64,000 nucleotides of DNA, from contig OZ251246.1 in assembly GCA_965240325.2 (NCBI GenBank), positions 434,001 to 498,000 of the forward strand, in the 5' to 3' direction. The stretch is from Rebecca billardiae RCC1528 (taxonomy: Eukaryota > Protista > Haptophyta). Below the pieces are notes generated by a model. The model made no database searches. It saw only the letters and a list, made by a program, of their open reading frames with translations, and was not told the DNA's origin. Both the position numbers and the translations under genes were made by a program. Positions 14,004-22,800 of the stretch are shown here, in pieces (position 1 is the first letter of the stretch; each line of letters begins with the position of its first letter).

Positions 14004-15104
14004 CTACTTCGACGCGCACGCATCAGCCGCCATCGGCTCAGCCGCGCGGCCAGCCAACGGCTGCTCGGCCATCGGCGCGCCGCTGCACGAGTGGCGCGCC
14101 CAGAGCTGCAACTGGCAGCGCTCGCACGAGCCGTCGGGCCGCTGGCTCTGCACGTGCCGCCGCCGGGCCTCGGTGTGCGCGCACGAGACGTCCCGCGGCG
14201 CGAGCTTGCCCCGCGAGCGCCAGCTCGCGTGCACGTCCAGCGCGCGCGGCCGTAGCCCGCGCCCCCACAGCGCACGGCCCCAGTAGCAGAGGGGCCACCA
14301 TGAGAAGCCCCACGGAAAAAGCGACTCGCCGTGCGCGCAGCAGCGCGGCGCGTGGCGCTCACCCTGAGCGAGCGGTGGCGCGGGCGGTGCCGAGCAAGGC
14401 GCGGTGCCGACGGTGTCGAGCGTGCGCAGCGCACTCGCCGCCACGTCGCGGGAGAGCAGCCACAGCCCGTCCGGCACCTGCGTCGCGAACCGCCAGACAG
14501 GCGGTGGCGCTCGCGCGCCCGGAGGCAGCGCTTGCGCGGCAGGCTGCAGGTTGTAGTCACAGGGCGAGGCCAGTGGGCGGTGGAAGTGCAGGTCGGGCCG
14601 GGCGAAGAGGACGGCGTCGAACGCGCGGCGCGTCTGCCGCTCGTGCGCCTCCACCGCCTCCCATGCGATCGCCATCATGCCCCACCAGCGTCGCGCTTTT
14701 CGATCAAGGCTCTCGCAGCCCTGAGAGCGCAGCCGCCTTTGCGCGCGCGCAGCGTCCGGCCGCGGCGCGGATGCAGCGCACTCCCAGATGCAGCGCGCGA
14801 CGGAGAGGTTTTGGAAGCGCTCGGTCGTCGGATCGACGGTCCAGATCGAGCGCACGCGCACCGATGCGCCGAGTGCGCCCACCTCAGACAGCACCTGCCT
14901 GTGCTGCTTGGCGCGCAGCGGCGCGCCCGTCCGGCTCATCGCCTTGAGCAGGACGAAAACAGCCGACTCGGCGTGGGCGCCGAGCGGCTCAATCACGTTG
15001 GGCCCGAACGAGGACAGCGGCGTGTGCGCGAGCCGCGGGTTGTACAGGCCGGTGATGACGATGGCCATGCGCACGGAGCAGTTCGCCGAGCGCGAGGCCG
15101 CCAT
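14004..15104 (-). CDS. Uncharacterised protein with an FD.V...RPDL motif (putative glycosyltransferase-like algal family)
   Basis: Coding-like 366-aa ORF with MAIVITG...R and FDAVLFARPDLHF. Head-to-head with the TMEM65-GAF gene. Confidence 0.5.
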   Translation of the reverse strand: MAASRSANCSVRMAIVITGLYNPRLAHTPLSSFGPNVIEPLGAHAESAVFVLLKAMSRTGAPLRAKQHRQVLSEVGALGASVRVRSIWTVDPTTERFQNLSVARCIWECAASAPRPDAARAQRRLRSQGCESLDRKARRWWGMMAIAWEAVEAHERQTRRAFDAVLFARPDLHFHRPLASPCDYNLQPAAQALPPGARAPPPVWRFATQVPDGLWLLSRDVAASALRTLDTVGTAPCSAPPAPPLAQGERHAPRCCAHGESLFPWGFSWWPLCYWGRALWGRGLRPRALDVHASWRSRGKLAPRDVSCAHTEARRRHVQSQRPDGSCERCQLQLWARHSCSGAPMAEQPLAGRAAEPMAADACASK

Positions 15105-15274
15105 CTTGAAGTACTCCCATATGAAGACGAGGAATCCGCCAGGAATCCCGTTCTGTACTTCCCGGTACCGTAGTACGTTTTACCCCGCCCGCGTTTGCGG
15201 GCGCGGAACGGCACGAAGGACGCTGAACAGGTGCGTGCGTCGTCCGCAGTCCGCCCGCGAGTCGCGACCGAGAG

Positions 15275-16407
15275 ATGGCTGGACGGTCGGGTCACGCCCT
15301 TCTTCGGCATCTCGCCGGCGCATGGACGCGTCGCCCAGGCGCGCGGCGGGCATTCGCCAGTACCGACGCTGCGGCAGGCCTACCATCCACCCCTCGCAGA
15401 CCCGCGGTCGAGCCGCCATCTTTCGAGCAGCTGCGCAAGCAGATGGTCGCCGCGGCGGTGCCAATGGTCGGGTTTGGCATCATGGACAACACGATCATGA
15501 TTTTCGCGGGCGACTACATCGACGCGACGTTCGGGGTGATGCTCGGGCTCTCGACGCTCACGGCCGCGGCGATGGGGCAGGTGCTCAGCGACTTCTGCGG
15601 CGTGTGTTTCGGTGGGACGGTTGAGGCGCTCGCCGCGCGCTGCGGCCTCCCAGACCCCAAGCTGACGTCCGCGCAGAGGAGGCTGCCGATCGTGGGCACT
15701 GTGACGACGGCGGGCGCGGCGATCGGCGTGCTCACCGGCTGCTGCATCGGCATGACCTCCCTCCTCTTCAAGGACCTCGACAAGGCCGACCGCGAGCGCC
15801 GCGCCCGCCGCCTCGAGTACGTCTTCACCACCGTGCTGCGCAACGGCCACGAAGTGCTGGGCGCGGAGCGCGCGACGCTGTGGCTGTACGACAAGGAGAA
15901 GAACGAGCTGTGGACGAGGACAACATCCGCAGTGGACACGTGCGCGCGCGCGCGCGCGCGCCCCGACCGCGCCCGTGTCCCCATGCCGCGAACGCACTGA
16001 CCGCTGCTCCTGCTCTCGCGCGCGCACCCGCGCCGCGCCTTCATTTGGGCAATAATTCATGACTGCTTGGTGGCCACAGCCAGCAGGAGGCGCACAAAAG
16101 CCTGCAGCTGATCCGGCTGCCCATCTCGAGCAGGTCGATCGCGGGCGCGTGCGCGGAGACGAAGCGCTCGATCTGCGTGCCCGACGCGTACGCAGACCCG
16201 CGCTTCAACAAGGAAGTCGACCAGAAGACCGGCCTGAACACCAAATCTATTCTGGTCTCGCCGGTCGTGGACACGGAGGGCGAGCTGCTCGGCGTCGTGC
16301 AGTGCGTGAACAAGAGCGAGGGAGGCCAGTTCACGCAGGAGGACGAGAGGGTGCTCAACACGCTGGCCCTGCACATCTCGATCTTTATCGAGTGCAATGC
16401 GGAGTGA
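15275..16407 (+). CDS. TMEM65-family protein fused to a C-terminal GAF domain; intron 15940-16079
   Basis: Arg-rich presequence-like N-terminus, then the TMEM65 signature PMVGFGIMDNTIMIFAGDYID...STLTAAAMGQVLSD...GCCIGM. A phase-2 intron joins AERATLWLYDKEKNELW to ...DAYADPRFNKEVDQKTGLNTKSILVSP...GVVQCVNK...FTQEDE (GAF). Confidence 0.9.
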
Positions 16408-16536: not shown

Positions 16537-17666
16537 CAGGGGCGTTCCCCGCGCGGGTCATGCGCCAATAAAAACTCACGCGCGAAAACAAAGCGCGGAA
16601 AATGAAAACGCGCTTGGCGCCGAAGGCGCGCTGGCGTCGATGGGCGCTTGGCGCGCGCGCGGCGCGGCGCGCTGCGGCCGTCGAGTTGCCATGCGAAGGC
16701 GGCGCGTTGCGTGCGTGGCATCGGAACGCTGCCGTGCTCCGCACTGCGCCCCGCAGCTCGCTCCTCGTCGACTTTGCTGCGCCTACGATCAGCGCGCACG
16801 CGAGCGTCGCCTCGGAATGAGCAGCCCGCGCCGGCCTCAGCCGTGAGCACCCGCCTGGCGCGCGATGCGATCAACTCGGGGCACGAGCTGCGGCTGGGCG
16901 AGGAAGCATGTGCCTGCGCGCAAGCCGCGCCGCCTTGAGACATCGATCGTGCGCGTTGATGCAGCTTCAGACGGCTGTCGACGAATGCCCATCAGCCTGC
17001 ACGAGCCTTGCATGCAGTGGAGATGAAACAACGGACCGTGAGCGCCCTGAAGCGATGAATAGGAGTCTTCGGGTTGCGTGTGCGCACAGCAACTCGTGTA
17101 CATCTATGCATCGCATGCGCGCGTGGCTGCCATCATGCCTTGCTTAAGCAGTTGCTCTGATAAGGAGTCCTTTCAAGGACACCGCGACAATGCGCAAGGG
17201 CAAGAAGAATAGTTGCGTGCAAGGTGCGTGCCCTGCTCACGATCGGTGTCTCAAGGCGGCGCGGCTTGCGCGCAGGCACATGCTTCCTCGCCCAGCCGCA
17301 GCTCGTGCCCCGAGTTGATCGCATCGCGCGCCAGGCGGGCGCTCACGGCTGAGGCCGGCGCGGGCTGCTCATTCCGAGGCGACGCTGGCGTGCGCGCTGA
17401 TCGTAGGCGCAGCAAAGTCGACGAGGAGCGAGCTGCGGGGCGCAGTGCGGAGCACGGCAGCGTTCAGATGCCACGCACGCAACGCGCCGCCTTCGCATGG
17501 CAACTCGACGGCCGCAGCGCGCCGCGCCGCGCGCGCGCCAAGCGCTGGTGCGCCGCAGTCCGGGTTGGCGGCCGCCACTGCCGCAGCGCCAGTCCGGAAG
17601 GCAAAGCCCCCGCAGCGGGGGCTTTGCTTTTCAGGAGCGTGTGGCAGGATCCCGGGAACGCCCTTG
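16537..17666. mobile_element. Non-autonomous foldback element, copy 1 (1130 bp)
   Basis: Termini CAGGGGCGTTCCC / GGGAACGCCCTTG. Internal ~308-bp inverted arms at 16644-16951 and 17238-17545 with ~4 mismatches. Homologous to the element at 24278-25386. No clean TSD. Confidence 0.8.
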
Positions 17667-17864: not shown

Positions 17865-19779
17865 TCACAAGTTGGAGAGGTGCGCCTTCACCTTCTTGAA
17901 CAGCTCGTGGAACGCAAACTGGTCGCCCTGCATGCGCTCGAAGGAGATTTGGTACGTGCCAGGCTCGCGCGCCGGCAGGATGAGCGCGCGGCAGCGCAGG
18001 CCGTTGGCTGGCGCGCGTGGAGGGCAGAGGCAGGCGCCGCGGCGCCGAGCAGGGTGGGTCAGGGCGAAGCGCGCGCGGCGCGCGGCGCGCGGCGCGCAGC
18101 GCGCGGCGCGCACGCACCTGCGTGCGCCGTGATCGCGAAGACCTCGCCGCCCTGCCGCTCGCTCACGTCAACGTCGCAGCCGAGCGCGTGCGAGGCGAAA
18201 GCGTCCTGCGCGGCGCGGGGGGGGGGGGGGGCGGCGCGGCGCGGCGCCGAGCTCGCGGTCAGATCGCAATCTCCGAGGTTCGAGAGTGCGGTGGATGAAC
18301 AGCGCGGCGGGCGCCCTGTGGCGCAGGTGTCGGAGATCGCGATCTCGCGATCTGACCGGAGATCGCGATCTCGCGATCTGACCGCGAGCACCGCCGCGCC
18401 CTGTGCTGCACAGTTGGCGTGGCGGGTCCGGCACGAGCAATGCCAGCCGCCGCGCACGCAGCCAGCCAGCGGCAGCAGCGCAGGCAGAGTGGCGGTGCCG
18501 ACTGCTGCCGGGGCAAGGACCGCGTGCGGAGCCATCGCAGCGGGCGCGGCGCGCGTGCACCGCACCTGTAGCCACAAGGACAGGTACTCCGGCTCGCGGT
18601 TCGCCGCGCTGAAGCCGAGCCGCTTCACGTACATCACCTGCCCCACCCAGGTCGGGTCCACAGGCGGTGCGCCGCCCTGCCCGCCCGCCGCGCCGCCGGC
18701 GGCGCGGCCGGGCGGCAGCGCGACCGTGCCGTCCTGAGCCTCAGACACGACGATGCGCGCGGGCTTGTGCGGCACGCTCGGCAGCAGCGGCCGCTCGGCG
18801 GAGTAGTGCGTCGCCACCTTGAAGAACTGCTGCGGGCGCAGGTTCACCAGCGGCGAGAGCATACTCGAGTAGTCCTGCGGGGCCGTGGAGAAAAAGAAAA
18901 AGGAAAGAATTCAAAATAAAGAAAGGTCACCCGAGCGAGCGGGAGGGCGCGCGGGGACAGTTGGGCCGACACCGTTGGGCGCGGCACACAGGCGCGTGGG
19001 GCGAGCGGCTTCGCGTCAGCACGCGCGCGCACGCACGCGCACGGCACGCACGCATGCGCGCGCGAAAACAGGCGTGCGCACGTGCGTGGCCCCGTCCTCC
19101 AATCATCCCACGCGCCATTCGGGCGCGCCGCGCCGGGGCACGCCACGCCACACACGCCACGCCACACACGCCGCGCCACACACGCCGCGCCACACACGCC
19201 GCGCCACACACGCCACGCCACACACGCCACGCCACACACGCCGCCCGCGCGTGGGCCCATGGGAGGGAGGCCACGGGCGCGTGGGCCCACGGGTGCCGGG
19301 GGCCGCGGGTGCGGGGGGGGGCGCACCTTGAGGACGCCCTTGAAGAGGATCGGCCGCCCGCCGTACTCGATCGGGTGCACGGTGAGGATGTTCCAAAACG
19401 CTTCGCCGCCCTTCCGATAGTTGAGGAGCTGCACCTTGCATGGCTGGCCGCGGCGCACGGCGGCGCCGAGCGCCGTGATGCACTGCTGGTCGGTGAGAAG
19501 GCCCTGGGTGAGCCGCGCGTTCCGGCCGACCACCTCGTGCCGCGCGTACCCGCACATCGACGACCACGCGCCCGTCACCGCGACGATCGGGTTGGTCGGC
19601 TGTGTCGCGTCGGTGACCACCACCGAGTCAGTATCGTCGTCCAAGTTGCCCATTACCCACTCGACGATCTGGTCCTTGACCGCCTGCACGCGCGCAGAGG
19701 CCGGCGAGGGGCTCCGCCCGCCGCACGGCCGGATCTCCTCGACCGGGTCGTCGTCGCCGCCACCGTGCCCGCCGCCGGT

Positions 19780-19820
<41 letters not shown>

Positions 19821-22800
19821 CGCCGCCGCCGCCGCCGTCGCCCGCCGCGCCGCCCCCGGCTGTGTCCTCGCCGTCGCCGTCTGCGCCGTTCCCACGGGCT
19901 CTTTTCTGCGGCGGCGGCGAGTCGACTTGGCGGGTGCTCACGACGCCCCCGCCCGCGCCGCCGCCGACGGCGCTCAGCGCGCCGCTGCGCGCGAGCGCCG
20001 CGCGAGCGCCGCTCCCATCGGCGGCGCACGCAAGCGATTCGCATGCCGGCGCGGGCGCGCACGCCGGCGCGGGCGCGCACGCCGGCGTGGGCCTCCGCTG
20101 TGCCGCCTCCGACGCAGCAGCCGTCAGCACGGGGCGGGGCACCAGCACGGGAGGGCCTGGCGGCGAGGGCGCGCCCACGTGCGCGTCCGCGCACGGCCGC
20201 TTGCCCAGCGCCGAGCCCTCGTGCACCACTGCGGGCGCGGCCGCCGGCGCGCCGCAGGCCGCGGGCACCGGCGGCGGCGGCGGCGGCGCGGCGGGAACGG
20301 CGGCAGAGAGGCCACCGGTGGCGCCCGGCCCGCTCAGCATGGCTGCCGCCGCGCCACCCGCGCGCAGCTGCCGCGCGAGCTGCGTGATGTGGGAGAAGGA
20401 GGAGGTCGAGACTTGGCCGCGCCGCATACCGGTGCCCGCTGCCACGAGAGGCGCGCCGCCAAGAATCAGCGAGCCACCGGCGGCGCCGCCCGGCAGAGGC
20501 GCGGCACCGGCCGAGGTGGCGCGCGGCGGCAGCGGCGTGCTGACAGGCGCGCCGTGCGAGCGCGCGCCGGCCGAAGGCGGCGGCTGCATCGACAGGAGCT
20601 GCTGCTGCTGCTGCTGCTGCTGCGGCTGTGGCGGCGGCGGCGGCGGCTGCTGCTGCTGCGGCGGCGGCGGCGGCGGCGGCTGCGGCTGCGTGTGCGGCGG
20701 GGCAGCGCCCGGCTGCGGCGGCGACACGGCGCGCGGCGCCTCGGCGGGCGAGGCGCGGCTTGGCGGGCCCGCGCTGCTGCCGCTGCCGCCGGCGGCATGC
20801 GCCTCCTGCGTCGGCCCACCAGCCGCCGCCGCCGCGCCATCCGCGCCGGCCAGCAGAATTGGGTCGAGCGCGCGCGGACGAGGCGTGCTCAGCGGCGTGC
20901 CGAGCGTGCCGCCCATGCCGCCGCCGAGCGCGGCCGAGCCCAGCGCGTGCAGCGCGCCGCCCTCGTGCTGCTGCTGCTGCGGCGATCGGGTGCACCACGA
21001 CTCGTACCCGGAGCCGCCGCGAGCGCCCGGCTCGAAACCGCCGAAACCGCCGCCGTAACCGCCGCCGTAACCGCCGCCAAAACCGCCGCCAAAACCGCCG
21101 CCAAAACCCGTTGCGCCGCCGCGGCCCGCCGCGCCGCCGCCGCCCGACGCCAGCGGGTCGGTGGGCTTCGAGGCGAGCGCGGCGACGCCGACGGCGGCGG
21201 GCGGGGGCGCCGTGCCGAGCGGCGAGCCAGAGCTCAGCGCGGGCGCGCAGGTGATCGATGGCGGCGGCGAGAGGCGCGGCAAGAGCTCGAACCCCGCCGC
21301 GGCCACGGGCGGCGCGCCGTGCGCGTGCGCGGCCGGCGCGCGCGCCGCCGGGGCCAGCCTGCACGGCGCGACGGCGGCGGCGGCGGAGGTCGTCGCGGGC
21401 GTGGCGGGCACGACCGACGCGGCGCCCGCCGCCGCCAGCTGCGCGCCCGCGCGCTCGAGCCAGCCGTTTGCGAGCAGCGCCGCCGGACTTGGCCGACGCA
21501 GCGGGTCCGGACAGAGCATCGATGCAATGTGCATGTGCAGCGCGGCCGAGTGCCCCTCGCACGCGGCCGCCGGCAGCGCGGCCACGAAGCGCGCGGCGAA
21601 GGCGAGGTGCGACCTGCGCGCCGGCGCGCCGGACGCCGCCTCCGCCGCCGCCGCCTCCGCCGCGGCGCGCGCGTACGCGCCGTAAGCCTCGCTGCCGCCC
21701 TCGCCCTGGGAGATTGCGATCTCCCACGGCATCTCGCCGTGGGTGAGCGCGTACGTGAACACGCCGAGCGCCCACACGTTCGCCGCCTGCGCGCACGTCA
21801 GCGCGAGCGTGCCGCCGACCTGCCCGCCGCCCACGCTCGCGTACGCCGCCGCGGCGCGCGCCTCCGCGGCCGCCAGCTCATCCGGCACAGCTCCGCCGTG
21901 CCGCCGCAGCGCGAGCAGCTCGGGCGCGGCGTACGCGGAGCCGGCCGTGCCGGCGGCGCACCCGAGCGTGCACGCCTCGAGCGTGCCCGGCGCGCGCGCC
22001 GGCCCGACGCAGCCGGCCACGCTCAGCTTCACCCGCCCCTCCGAGTCCAAAAGGCACTTGCTCGCGCGCAGCCGCGTGTGCGCGAGCCCGCGCGCGTGCA
22101 CGTAGCCCAGGCCTGTGGTGAGCCGCTGCGCGAGCGAGCGGCACGCACGGCGGGCAGGGCGCGGGCGGCGCGAGGCGCGGCTCAGAGCCGGCGCGGCCGA
22201 GCGGCGCGGTGGCCGCGCGCCTGCCGCGCACGGCTTCGCGCCCGCACCCGAATGTGTGCGTGGGCGGTCGACTCGTGCAGCCCTGCGCACTCGTCCGCAC
22301 ACTCGAGGAGGAGGTCGAGCAGGTCGCCGCCGGCGCACAGCTCGGTGATGTACACGCACGTCTGGCCGTCCTCCGCCAGCCAGAAGCCGAGCGTTGCCAC
22401 CACGCACGGGTGCGTCAGCCCGAACAACGCCTCCGCCTGTCGCGCACGCCGGATGGCGCGCAGAGCGGCGGCGGTGGCGGCGGCGTCAGCAGGCGAGTGG
22501 CACGTGGGTCGAGGGCGCGCATGGCGAGGCGGGCGCAGCGCACCATCTCTGCAGCGTGCGCGCTCGGCACGCAGATCTTGGCGGCCGCGTGCTCGCCCGT
22601 GTCAGCGTTGCGCGCGACGCGAATCTCGCTCGATTCGGAGATGTGGAGCACGCCGAGGGGCGAGGAGTCCACGATGAAACGACCGCGTTCACAAGTCACC
22701 TCGTCGACACCCGCCTTGGCGAACGTGGGCCCGCCCGAGTCGAGCGAGCTCGTGGCGAGCGACATGAGCGGAGGGTTGGGGGGCCACCCTGAAAGAATCT

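Follow-up and report, generated by a model that had tools for sequence, protein, structure and literature searches.

TMEM65 has only recently been established as a mitochondrial Na+/Ca2+ exchanger (papers from 2023 to 2026, including PMC12830682 and PMC13254257). The human protein was placed in the inner mitochondrial membrane by several methods (PMC12830682; PMC13254257), and four of its residues, D132, D167, G170 and E178, are needed for activity (Vetralla et al., PMC12830682). Among GAF domains, the contacts with cyclic AMP (cAMP) have been described for GAF-B of CyaB2, a cyclase of the cyanobacterium Anabaena, where R291 reaches N1 of the adenine, T293 reaches N6/N7 and T309 reaches N6 (Biswas et al., PMC4411481). 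Here we describe a gene of the haptophyte Rebecca billardiae RCC1528 in which a TMEM65 domain is followed by a GAF domain. It is located on the plus strand at positions 15275-16407 of a 64,000-nt window, i.e., the whole stretch of DNA that was analyzed (positions 434,001 to 498,000 of contig OZ251246.1, assembly GCA_965240325.2). In our reading, this nuclear gene is intact and encodes a cation exchanger of the TMEM65 type that has a single GAF domain of the phosphodiesterase (PDE)/cyclase type in place of the short C-terminal tail and would be regulated by a cyclic nucleotide; taken as a whole, this reading has, in our judgment, slightly better than an even chance of being correct.

An initial annotation of this DNA had recognized a presequence-like N-terminus, a complete TMEM65 domain, a short helix and a PDE-type GAF domain with the NK...F...DE motif, joined by one clean intron. 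All of these elements were recovered in our analysis, with the values given in the following sections.

Gene model and TMEM65 core

The gene is composed of two exons. Exon 1 (15275-15939, plus strand; 665 nt) begins with the ATG at 15275, which in the list of open reading frames (ORFs) is the first in frame downstream of a stop codon, and it encodes aa 1-221 and two bases of codon 222, covering the presequence, the TMEM65 domain, a linker and the initial third of the GAF domain. The intron (15940-16079, plus strand; 140 nt) is of the GT..AG type (GTGCGC...CACAG), with an alternating (GC)n run at 15941-15960, directly 3' of its GT donor. Exon 2 (16080-16407, plus strand; 328 nt) supplies the last base of codon 222, aa 223-330, which hold the other two thirds of the GAF domain, and a TGA stop codon. 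The spliced coding sequence of 993 nt is in frame and encodes 330 aa, with no internal stops and no frameshifts in the exons. Third codon positions have a G+C content of 0.86 (exon 1) and 0.92 (exon 2); the intron, when read in the continuing frame, has 0.63 and lacks the periodicity. The unspliced exon-1 ORF ends at an in-frame TGA (15998-16000) inside the intron, so that intron retention would yield a 241-aa protein without a complete GAF domain.

Pfam analysis of exon 2 alone identified a GAF domain (PF01590, 58.3 bits) covering profile positions 51-131 of 133. The missing start lies in the last part of exon 1, which can be aligned without gaps with chain residues 215-252 of CyaB2 GAF-B (E 4e-12). 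The intron therefore divides the GAF domain itself, and neither exon alone makes one. Furthermore, 136 of the 177 retrieved homologues, many of which are derived from transcriptomes (MMETSP and TRINITY entries), align as a single high-scoring segment that starts ahead of aa 150, crosses codon 222 and extends past aa 300, and the best of the 177 share 46-48% identity with the spliced protein over 265-300 aa. At the level of sequence, these comparisons confirm the TMEM65-GAF locus as a genuine single two-exon gene. A gene-model artifact, in which adjacent TMEM65 and small GAF genes, or a pseudogene, would have been wrongly joined, is highly improbable. It is true that a prokaryote-style gene caller divided the locus into two ORFs and that several in-frame GT/AG pairs are present, but the exon-2 ORF lacks GAF helix 1 and strands 1-2, the third-position G+C periodicity is strong in both exons and not in the intron, and the exons are free of frameshifts and stops. 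The division of the GAF domain by the intron and the 136 collinear homologues led us to reject the reading as two separate genes.

The junction falls in the loop between strands beta2 and beta3 of the GAF domain. The length of this loop varies across the family, so homology cannot place the junction to the base, and leaves an uncertainty of about ±4 codons. Two alternative in-frame GT/AG pairs lie in the same loop, 15932/16083 (yielding 326 aa) and 15932/16086 (325 aa), while donors further 5' would remove conserved strands. None of the alternative pairs would change the predicted TMEM65-GAF architecture.

The TMEM65 domain (15452-15772, plus strand; aa 60-166) matches PF10507 with 137.1 bits (cut-off 25) over profile positions 2-108 of 109, and is thus complete. 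Hydropathy analysis distinguished three hydrophobic segments, at about aa 57-78, 82-110 and 137-165. The four residues required in human TMEM65 correspond here to D71, D106, G109 and E117, as mapped through the motif context of the mutagenesis primers given in PMC12830682 rather than through a full alignment with the human protein. In the 137-sequence alignment from which all family counts reported here were taken, these positions are kept in 133-137 members (97-100%), the last one as D or E, and G109 and other family glycine positions are more than 90% conserved, as in a Gly-rich (glycine-zipper) helix. Since the four activity residues are conserved, the transport core looks intact, and is apparently functional. 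A sequence search of the PDB found no solved TMEM65 structure.

The GAF domain and its predicted ligand

The N-terminal third of the GAF domain (15809-15939, plus strand) comprises a helix and strands beta1 and beta2, with R199, T201, T216 and T217, and it is this part that matches CyaB2 GAF-B. The NKFDE signature (16309-16347, plus strand) is complete, being formed by N299, K300, F306, D310 and E311. A PDB sequence search with exon 2 yielded 21 distinct sequences at E ≤ 0.01, of which 19 are cyclic nucleotide-binding GAF domains of PDE2A, PDE5, PDE6, PDE10A, CyaB2 or Lcd1; the top match was the cAMP-binding GAF-B of PDE10A (E 4.5e-19).

The fold was analyzed using a homologue (P0002, 47% identical), which was modeled with a 25-row family alignment. 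The model has a mean pLDDT of 78, and most values in the GAF blocks exceed 90. In a Foldseek comparison with the PDB, almost all of the top 39 places were filled by PDE2A, PDE10A, PDE5, CyaB2, PDE6 and Lcd1, and the alignment with PDE10A GAF-B gave a TM-score of 0.75 and a root mean square deviation of 3.6 Å over 158 columns.

In the ungapped alignment, R199 corresponds to R291 of CyaB2, T201 to T293 and T217 to T309 (four residue letters were compared with PMC4411481 to check the CyaB2 chain offset). Arg is present at the R291 position in 117 of the 137 family members, and Thr or Ser at the T293 position in 129. Residues D269 and T272 probably correspond to D356 and N359 of CyaB2, an assignment made by chain offset only. 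The protein has the block DPRFNxEVDxxTGxxT and the Gln preceding NK in common with PDE10A, PDE5 and Lcd1; in the TMEM65-GAF family the Asp of EVD is found in 130 of 137 sequences, the Thr of TGxxT in 127, and Gln or Glu before NK in 136. The signature itself is similarly well kept (N in 129, K in 127, F in 132, D in 131 and E in 92 of the 137).

By these matches the GAF domain is of the cyclic nucleotide-binding type of PDEs and cyclases, and single isolated GAF domains are known to bind their ligand (PMC4411481). As judged from the base-contact residues, the pocket looks more like that of cAMP-binding CyaB2 than those of PDE2 and PDE5, which bind cyclic GMP (cGMP), and the predicted ligand is somewhat more likely to be cAMP than cGMP.

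Predicted localization and orientation, and proposed regulation

The presequence-like N-terminus (15275-15355, plus strand; aa 1-27) is Arg-rich, devoid of acidic residues and amphipathic: residues 1-30 include six Arg and no Asp or Glu, and the amphipathic stretch has a hydrophobic moment (muH) of 0.56. The motif RAF/AS at aa 25-29 resembles an R-3 processing site. No window is hydrophobic before aa 57, and a signal-peptide core is therefore lacking; in several homologues the alignment already starts at aa 4-24. The composition of the N-terminus and homology to animal TMEM65 suggest a mitochondrial location. It is improbable that the protein acts in another membrane, of the plastid or the endomembrane system, regulating ion flux there. 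Such an alternative draws on a claimed non-mitochondrial location of mammalian TMEM65 (Sharma 2015, as cited in PMC13254257), but the complex-plastid or endoplasmic reticulum route requires a hydrophobic signal-peptide core, in place of which the first 30 residues show a surplus of Arg, and the human protein was assigned to the inner membrane.

Transmembrane segment 3 (TM3) is connected with the first GAF helix by a juxtamembrane linker (15761-15814, plus strand; aa 163-180, LLFKDLDKADRERRARRL), which is among the best-conserved parts of the protein. Its consensus is LLFxD-x-[DE]-x-A-[ED]-R-x-[KR][KR]A..L, with D167 kept in 137 and R173 in 127 of the 137 family members. In the model of homologue P0002, the TM3 helix is directly followed by a long helix (H151-178, H181-207). 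An element coupling TM3 to the GAF domain would look like this.

In human TMEM65, Y77 and the N-terminus were assigned to the matrix, and a C-terminal tag is lost when mitoplasts are treated with proteinase K (PMC12830682; also PMC13254257). Given three helices and a matrix-side N-terminus, the GAF domain should face the intermembrane space, and this orientation of the sensor, rather than one toward the matrix, is most likely by analogy with the human protein. Removal of the poly-acidic C-tail lowers the activity of human TMEM65 (PMC12830682), which makes the C-terminus a plausible regulatory site.

The regulation that we propose would proceed in five steps: (i) the Arg-rich presequence would direct the protein to the mitochondrial inner membrane; (ii) the three TMEM65 helices would insert with the N-terminus in the matrix, like those of human TMEM65; (iii) the GAF domain would remain in the intermembrane space, which outer-membrane porins open to small solutes of the cytosol; (iv) it would bind a cyclic nucleotide, cAMP being a somewhat likelier candidate than cGMP; and (v) its closure on the ligand would be transmitted through the helical linker (LLFxD..A[ED]R..) to TM3, altering Na+-dependent Ca2+ efflux. 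We infer all five steps, and likewise the direction of regulation (activation or inhibition).

Several observations weigh against this reading. The exact splice junction is placed by comparison, the fold evidence comes from homologue P0002 and not from the protein encoded in the window, and binding, localization and the effect on transport are predicted for every member of the family. Of the family mean net charges, those of the acidic TM1-TM2 loop (-1.9) and of the positive N-terminal flank (+1.4) and TM2-TM3 loop (+0.8) speak for the proposed orientation; that of the C-terminal flank (+0.7) is only slightly positive, close to neutral, so that charge bias alone does not settle it. The NKFDE signature does not by itself prove ligand binding: PDE GAF domains without nucleotide binding have it as well, and some PDE GAF domains bearing it serve only dimerization. 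The Phe-Asp pair of PDE2 and PDE5, which helps both enzymes to read guanine, is absent and replaced by Ala-Thr in the TMEM65-GAF family, so that nucleotide specificity is not readable from the sequence. The residue of PDE5 with a role in reading guanine is Asp164 (PMC4411481). Finally, T216 takes the place of I308 of CyaB2, the stacking residue on which high-affinity binding is reported to depend (PMC4411481); most family members (93 of 137) have Val or Ile there.

Thr216 and the NKFDE-bearing GAF domains that only dimerize would also suit a different reading, in which the fusion is real and the GAF domain does not sense cAMP or cGMP. It would then bind a different small molecule, an ion or no ligand, and would act as a dimerization or scaffold module that joins TMEM65 subunits. 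The ligands of GAF domains are diverse, haem, bilins and formate being among them (PMC4411481), and 4mcw, an HD-GYP GAF domain whose entry title names no cyclic nucleotide ligand, is among the best matches. We consider this reading somewhat unlikely, since the closest solved relatives other than 4mcw are ligand-binding cyclic nucleotide GAF domains, and the base-contact Arg and Thr, together with the motif of the phosphate/ribose region, are kept in 85-95% of the 137 sequences, which would be difficult to account for if the module were purely structural. The initial annotation had proposed a cyclic nucleotide-regulated mitochondrial ion-transport component; the real fusion, the intact TMEM65 residues and the cyclic nucleotide-type GAF domain uphold the structural part of that proposal, whereas ligand binding, location and regulation keep the standing of predictions.

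Distribution, locus and comparison with known systems

The fusion is, by sequence comparison, a large and old family that is not peculiar to this genome. A word search with exon 1 retrieved 63 relatives, of which 20 have a precomputed GAF domain, and a profile built from 25 fusions matched at least 548 database proteins at E ≤ 1e-10; both TMEM65 and GAF domains are present in 119 of the best 120 of these 548 matches. The nearest relative among the 177 retrieved homologues shares only about 48% identity with the protein of R. billardiae. The sources include (i) diatoms (Skeletonema, Thalassiosira, Cyclotella, Seminavis and Cylindrotheca) and other stramenopiles (Triparma, Chrysophaeum, Tribonema, Ectocarpus, Cladosiphon and Hondaea); (ii) dinoflagellates (Amphidinium, Gymnodinium and Alexandrium) and other alveolates (Amoebophrya and Perkinsus); (iii) Rhizaria of the chlorarachniophyte group (Amorphochlora and a Chlorarachnion-type transcriptome); (iv) Goniomonas (Cryptista) and Spironema sp. 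BW2 (Hemimastigophora; P0207); and (v) unicellular Holozoa, namely the ichthyosporean Creolimax fragrantissima (genome model P0185) and, among choanoflagellates, Salpingoeca urceolata (P0104). The last entry could be a contaminant, being derived from a transcriptome. Apicomplexa and Chlorophyta are the commonest phyla in ESM Atlas clusters with TMEM65 in 100% and GAF in 93% of members. No Toxoplasma entry was listed in the word search with a 595-aa query; the Toxoplasma protein TGGT1_270800, described in its annotation as containing a GAF domain, was reported from a mitochondrial membrane fraction (PMC7877769); as a candidate member of the TMEM65-GAF family, it is an unverified lead toward a mitochondrial location.

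Other sensors occur at the same position. In one sub-family (P0005, P0166, P0208, P0205 and P0247) an EF-hand pair is nested in the beta2-beta3 loop of the GAF domain; in P0005 the GAF domain spans residues 129-333 and the EF-hands 173-234. The nested EF-hands occupy the same loop as the intron of the R. billardiae gene. Two further relatives (P0044 and P0053) carry a C-terminal ACT domain, another small-molecule sensor, in place of the GAF domain; that of P0044 (residues 221-284) scored 25.8 bits, just below the cut-off of 27. The C-terminal position of protist TMEM65 proteins may thus bear a GAF domain, a GAF domain with nested EF-hands, or an ACT domain, and the recurrence of sensors at this place, together with the effect of the human C-tail, marks the C-terminus as a plausible regulatory site.

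Since both Hemimastigophora and single-celled relatives of animals have the fusion, it is probably of great age, with a loss in animals, and its spread over SAR, Cryptista, Hemimastigophora, Chlorophyta and unicellular Holozoa suggests that it could be ancestral. A bolder proposal, which we put forward tentatively and hold at less than even, is that TMEM65-GAF proteins are mitochondrial Na+/Ca2+ exchangers gated directly by cyclic nucleotides, with an intermembrane-space sensor reading cytosolic cAMP or cGMP; that the fusion may be the ancestral eukaryotic form, of which animal TMEM65 would be a truncated descendant keeping an acidic tail; and that the nested EF-hand variants would combine Ca2+ and cyclic nucleotide signals. 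A transporter-sensor fusion found across most eukaryotic supergroups points to second-messenger regulation of TMEM65 through its C-terminus, and so bears on the active question of how its mitochondrial Na+/Ca2+ exchange is regulated. If this holds true, mitochondrial Ca2+ export would be switched directly by a second messenger. TMEM65-GAF proteins are naturally simple, with sensor and transporter in one chain, and would permit direct tests of cAMP or cGMP control of mitochondrial Ca2+ efflux, for which diatoms and, should its homologue be confirmed, Toxoplasma are suitable tractable hosts.

Within the window, which has a G+C content of 68.6% and a eukaryote-style gene organization, the fusion gene is preceded by a divergent intergenic region (15105-15274, no strand assigned) of 170 bp, separating its ATG from that of an ORF on the minus strand (14004-15104; 366 aa). 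The G+C content of this region is 0.62, vs. 0.69 for the window, and it is presumed to be the shared promoter region of both divergent genes. Only the first ~150 aa of the minus-strand ORF are protein-like, and it matched no Pfam family. An inverted repeat (16644-16954 and 17235-17545; 311 nt, 98% complementary, with a spacer of 280 nt) begins 237 nt 3' of the stop codon of the fusion gene. Pfam analysis of the neighboring ORFs gave nothing apart from a long minus-strand ORF (18847-22407) with weak matches to a protein kinase (32 bits) and PAS_9 (40 bits). As the neighboring ORFs are without informative Pfam matches, the genomic context is uninformative for the fusion gene.

Several relatives are present in databases under misleading automatic names, which can now be corrected: P0116 of Seminavis robusta is named "PDE10A", P0158 of Hondaea fermentalgiana "cGMP-specific PDE", and several JGI entries "methionine-R-sulfoxide reductase with GAF domain". 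For all of these the listed Pfam domains are TMEM65 and GAF only, P0116 and P0158 being 276-314 aa long. For the R. billardiae protein a PDE identity was rejected, since Pfam shows only these two domains and the protein ends about 20 aa past the NKFDE signature. Free methionine-R-sulfoxide reductase (fRMsr) was also rejected: no chain of this name is among the PDB matches at E ≤ 0.01, and the family alignment shows no conservation of the cysteines of its GAF domain (C246, C254 and C297). The initial annotation had known of no described example of the fusion. This still holds for the searchable literature, where no paper combining TMEM65 with a GAF domain was found, but not for sequence databases, in which the architecture is widespread. 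Proteins with the same order of TMEM65 and GAF domains and 40-48% identity include a "TMEM65 domain-containing protein" of Skeletonema marinoi, CTAYLR_004352 of Chrysophaeum taylorii, proteins of Triparma and Amoebophrya, and CFRG6387T1 of Creolimax.

Many non-metazoan TMEM65 orthologues were reported to contain an EF-hand (PMC13254257, Supplementary Fig. 1), and the term "GAF" has no occurrences in the text and supplements of that paper. These orthologues belong to the same family as the protein described here; in the members checked (P0005, P0166, P0208 and P0205) the reported EF-hands sit within an unreported GAF domain, whereas the R. billardiae protein has a short beta2-beta3 loop and no EF-hands. 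With human and animal TMEM65 it shares the complete TMEM65 domain, the three hydrophobic segments, the N-terminal presequence and the four activity residues; it differs in what follows TM3, a short poly-acidic tail in animals and a conserved linker with a GAF domain of ~150 aa here. With GAF-B of PDE10A and PDE2A, GAF-A of PDE5 and PDE6, and CyaB2, which are its best sequence and fold matches, it shares the full NKFDE signature; the residues matching R291, T293 and T309 of CyaB2 and the block DPRFNxEVDxxTGxxT are kept, but Thr stands at the I308 position and the Phe-Asp pair of PDE2 and PDE5 is absent. Where the others have a tandem pair, the R. billardiae protein has a single GAF domain, located C-terminally of a membrane transporter as the presumed effector, and not of a PDE or cyclase catalytic domain.

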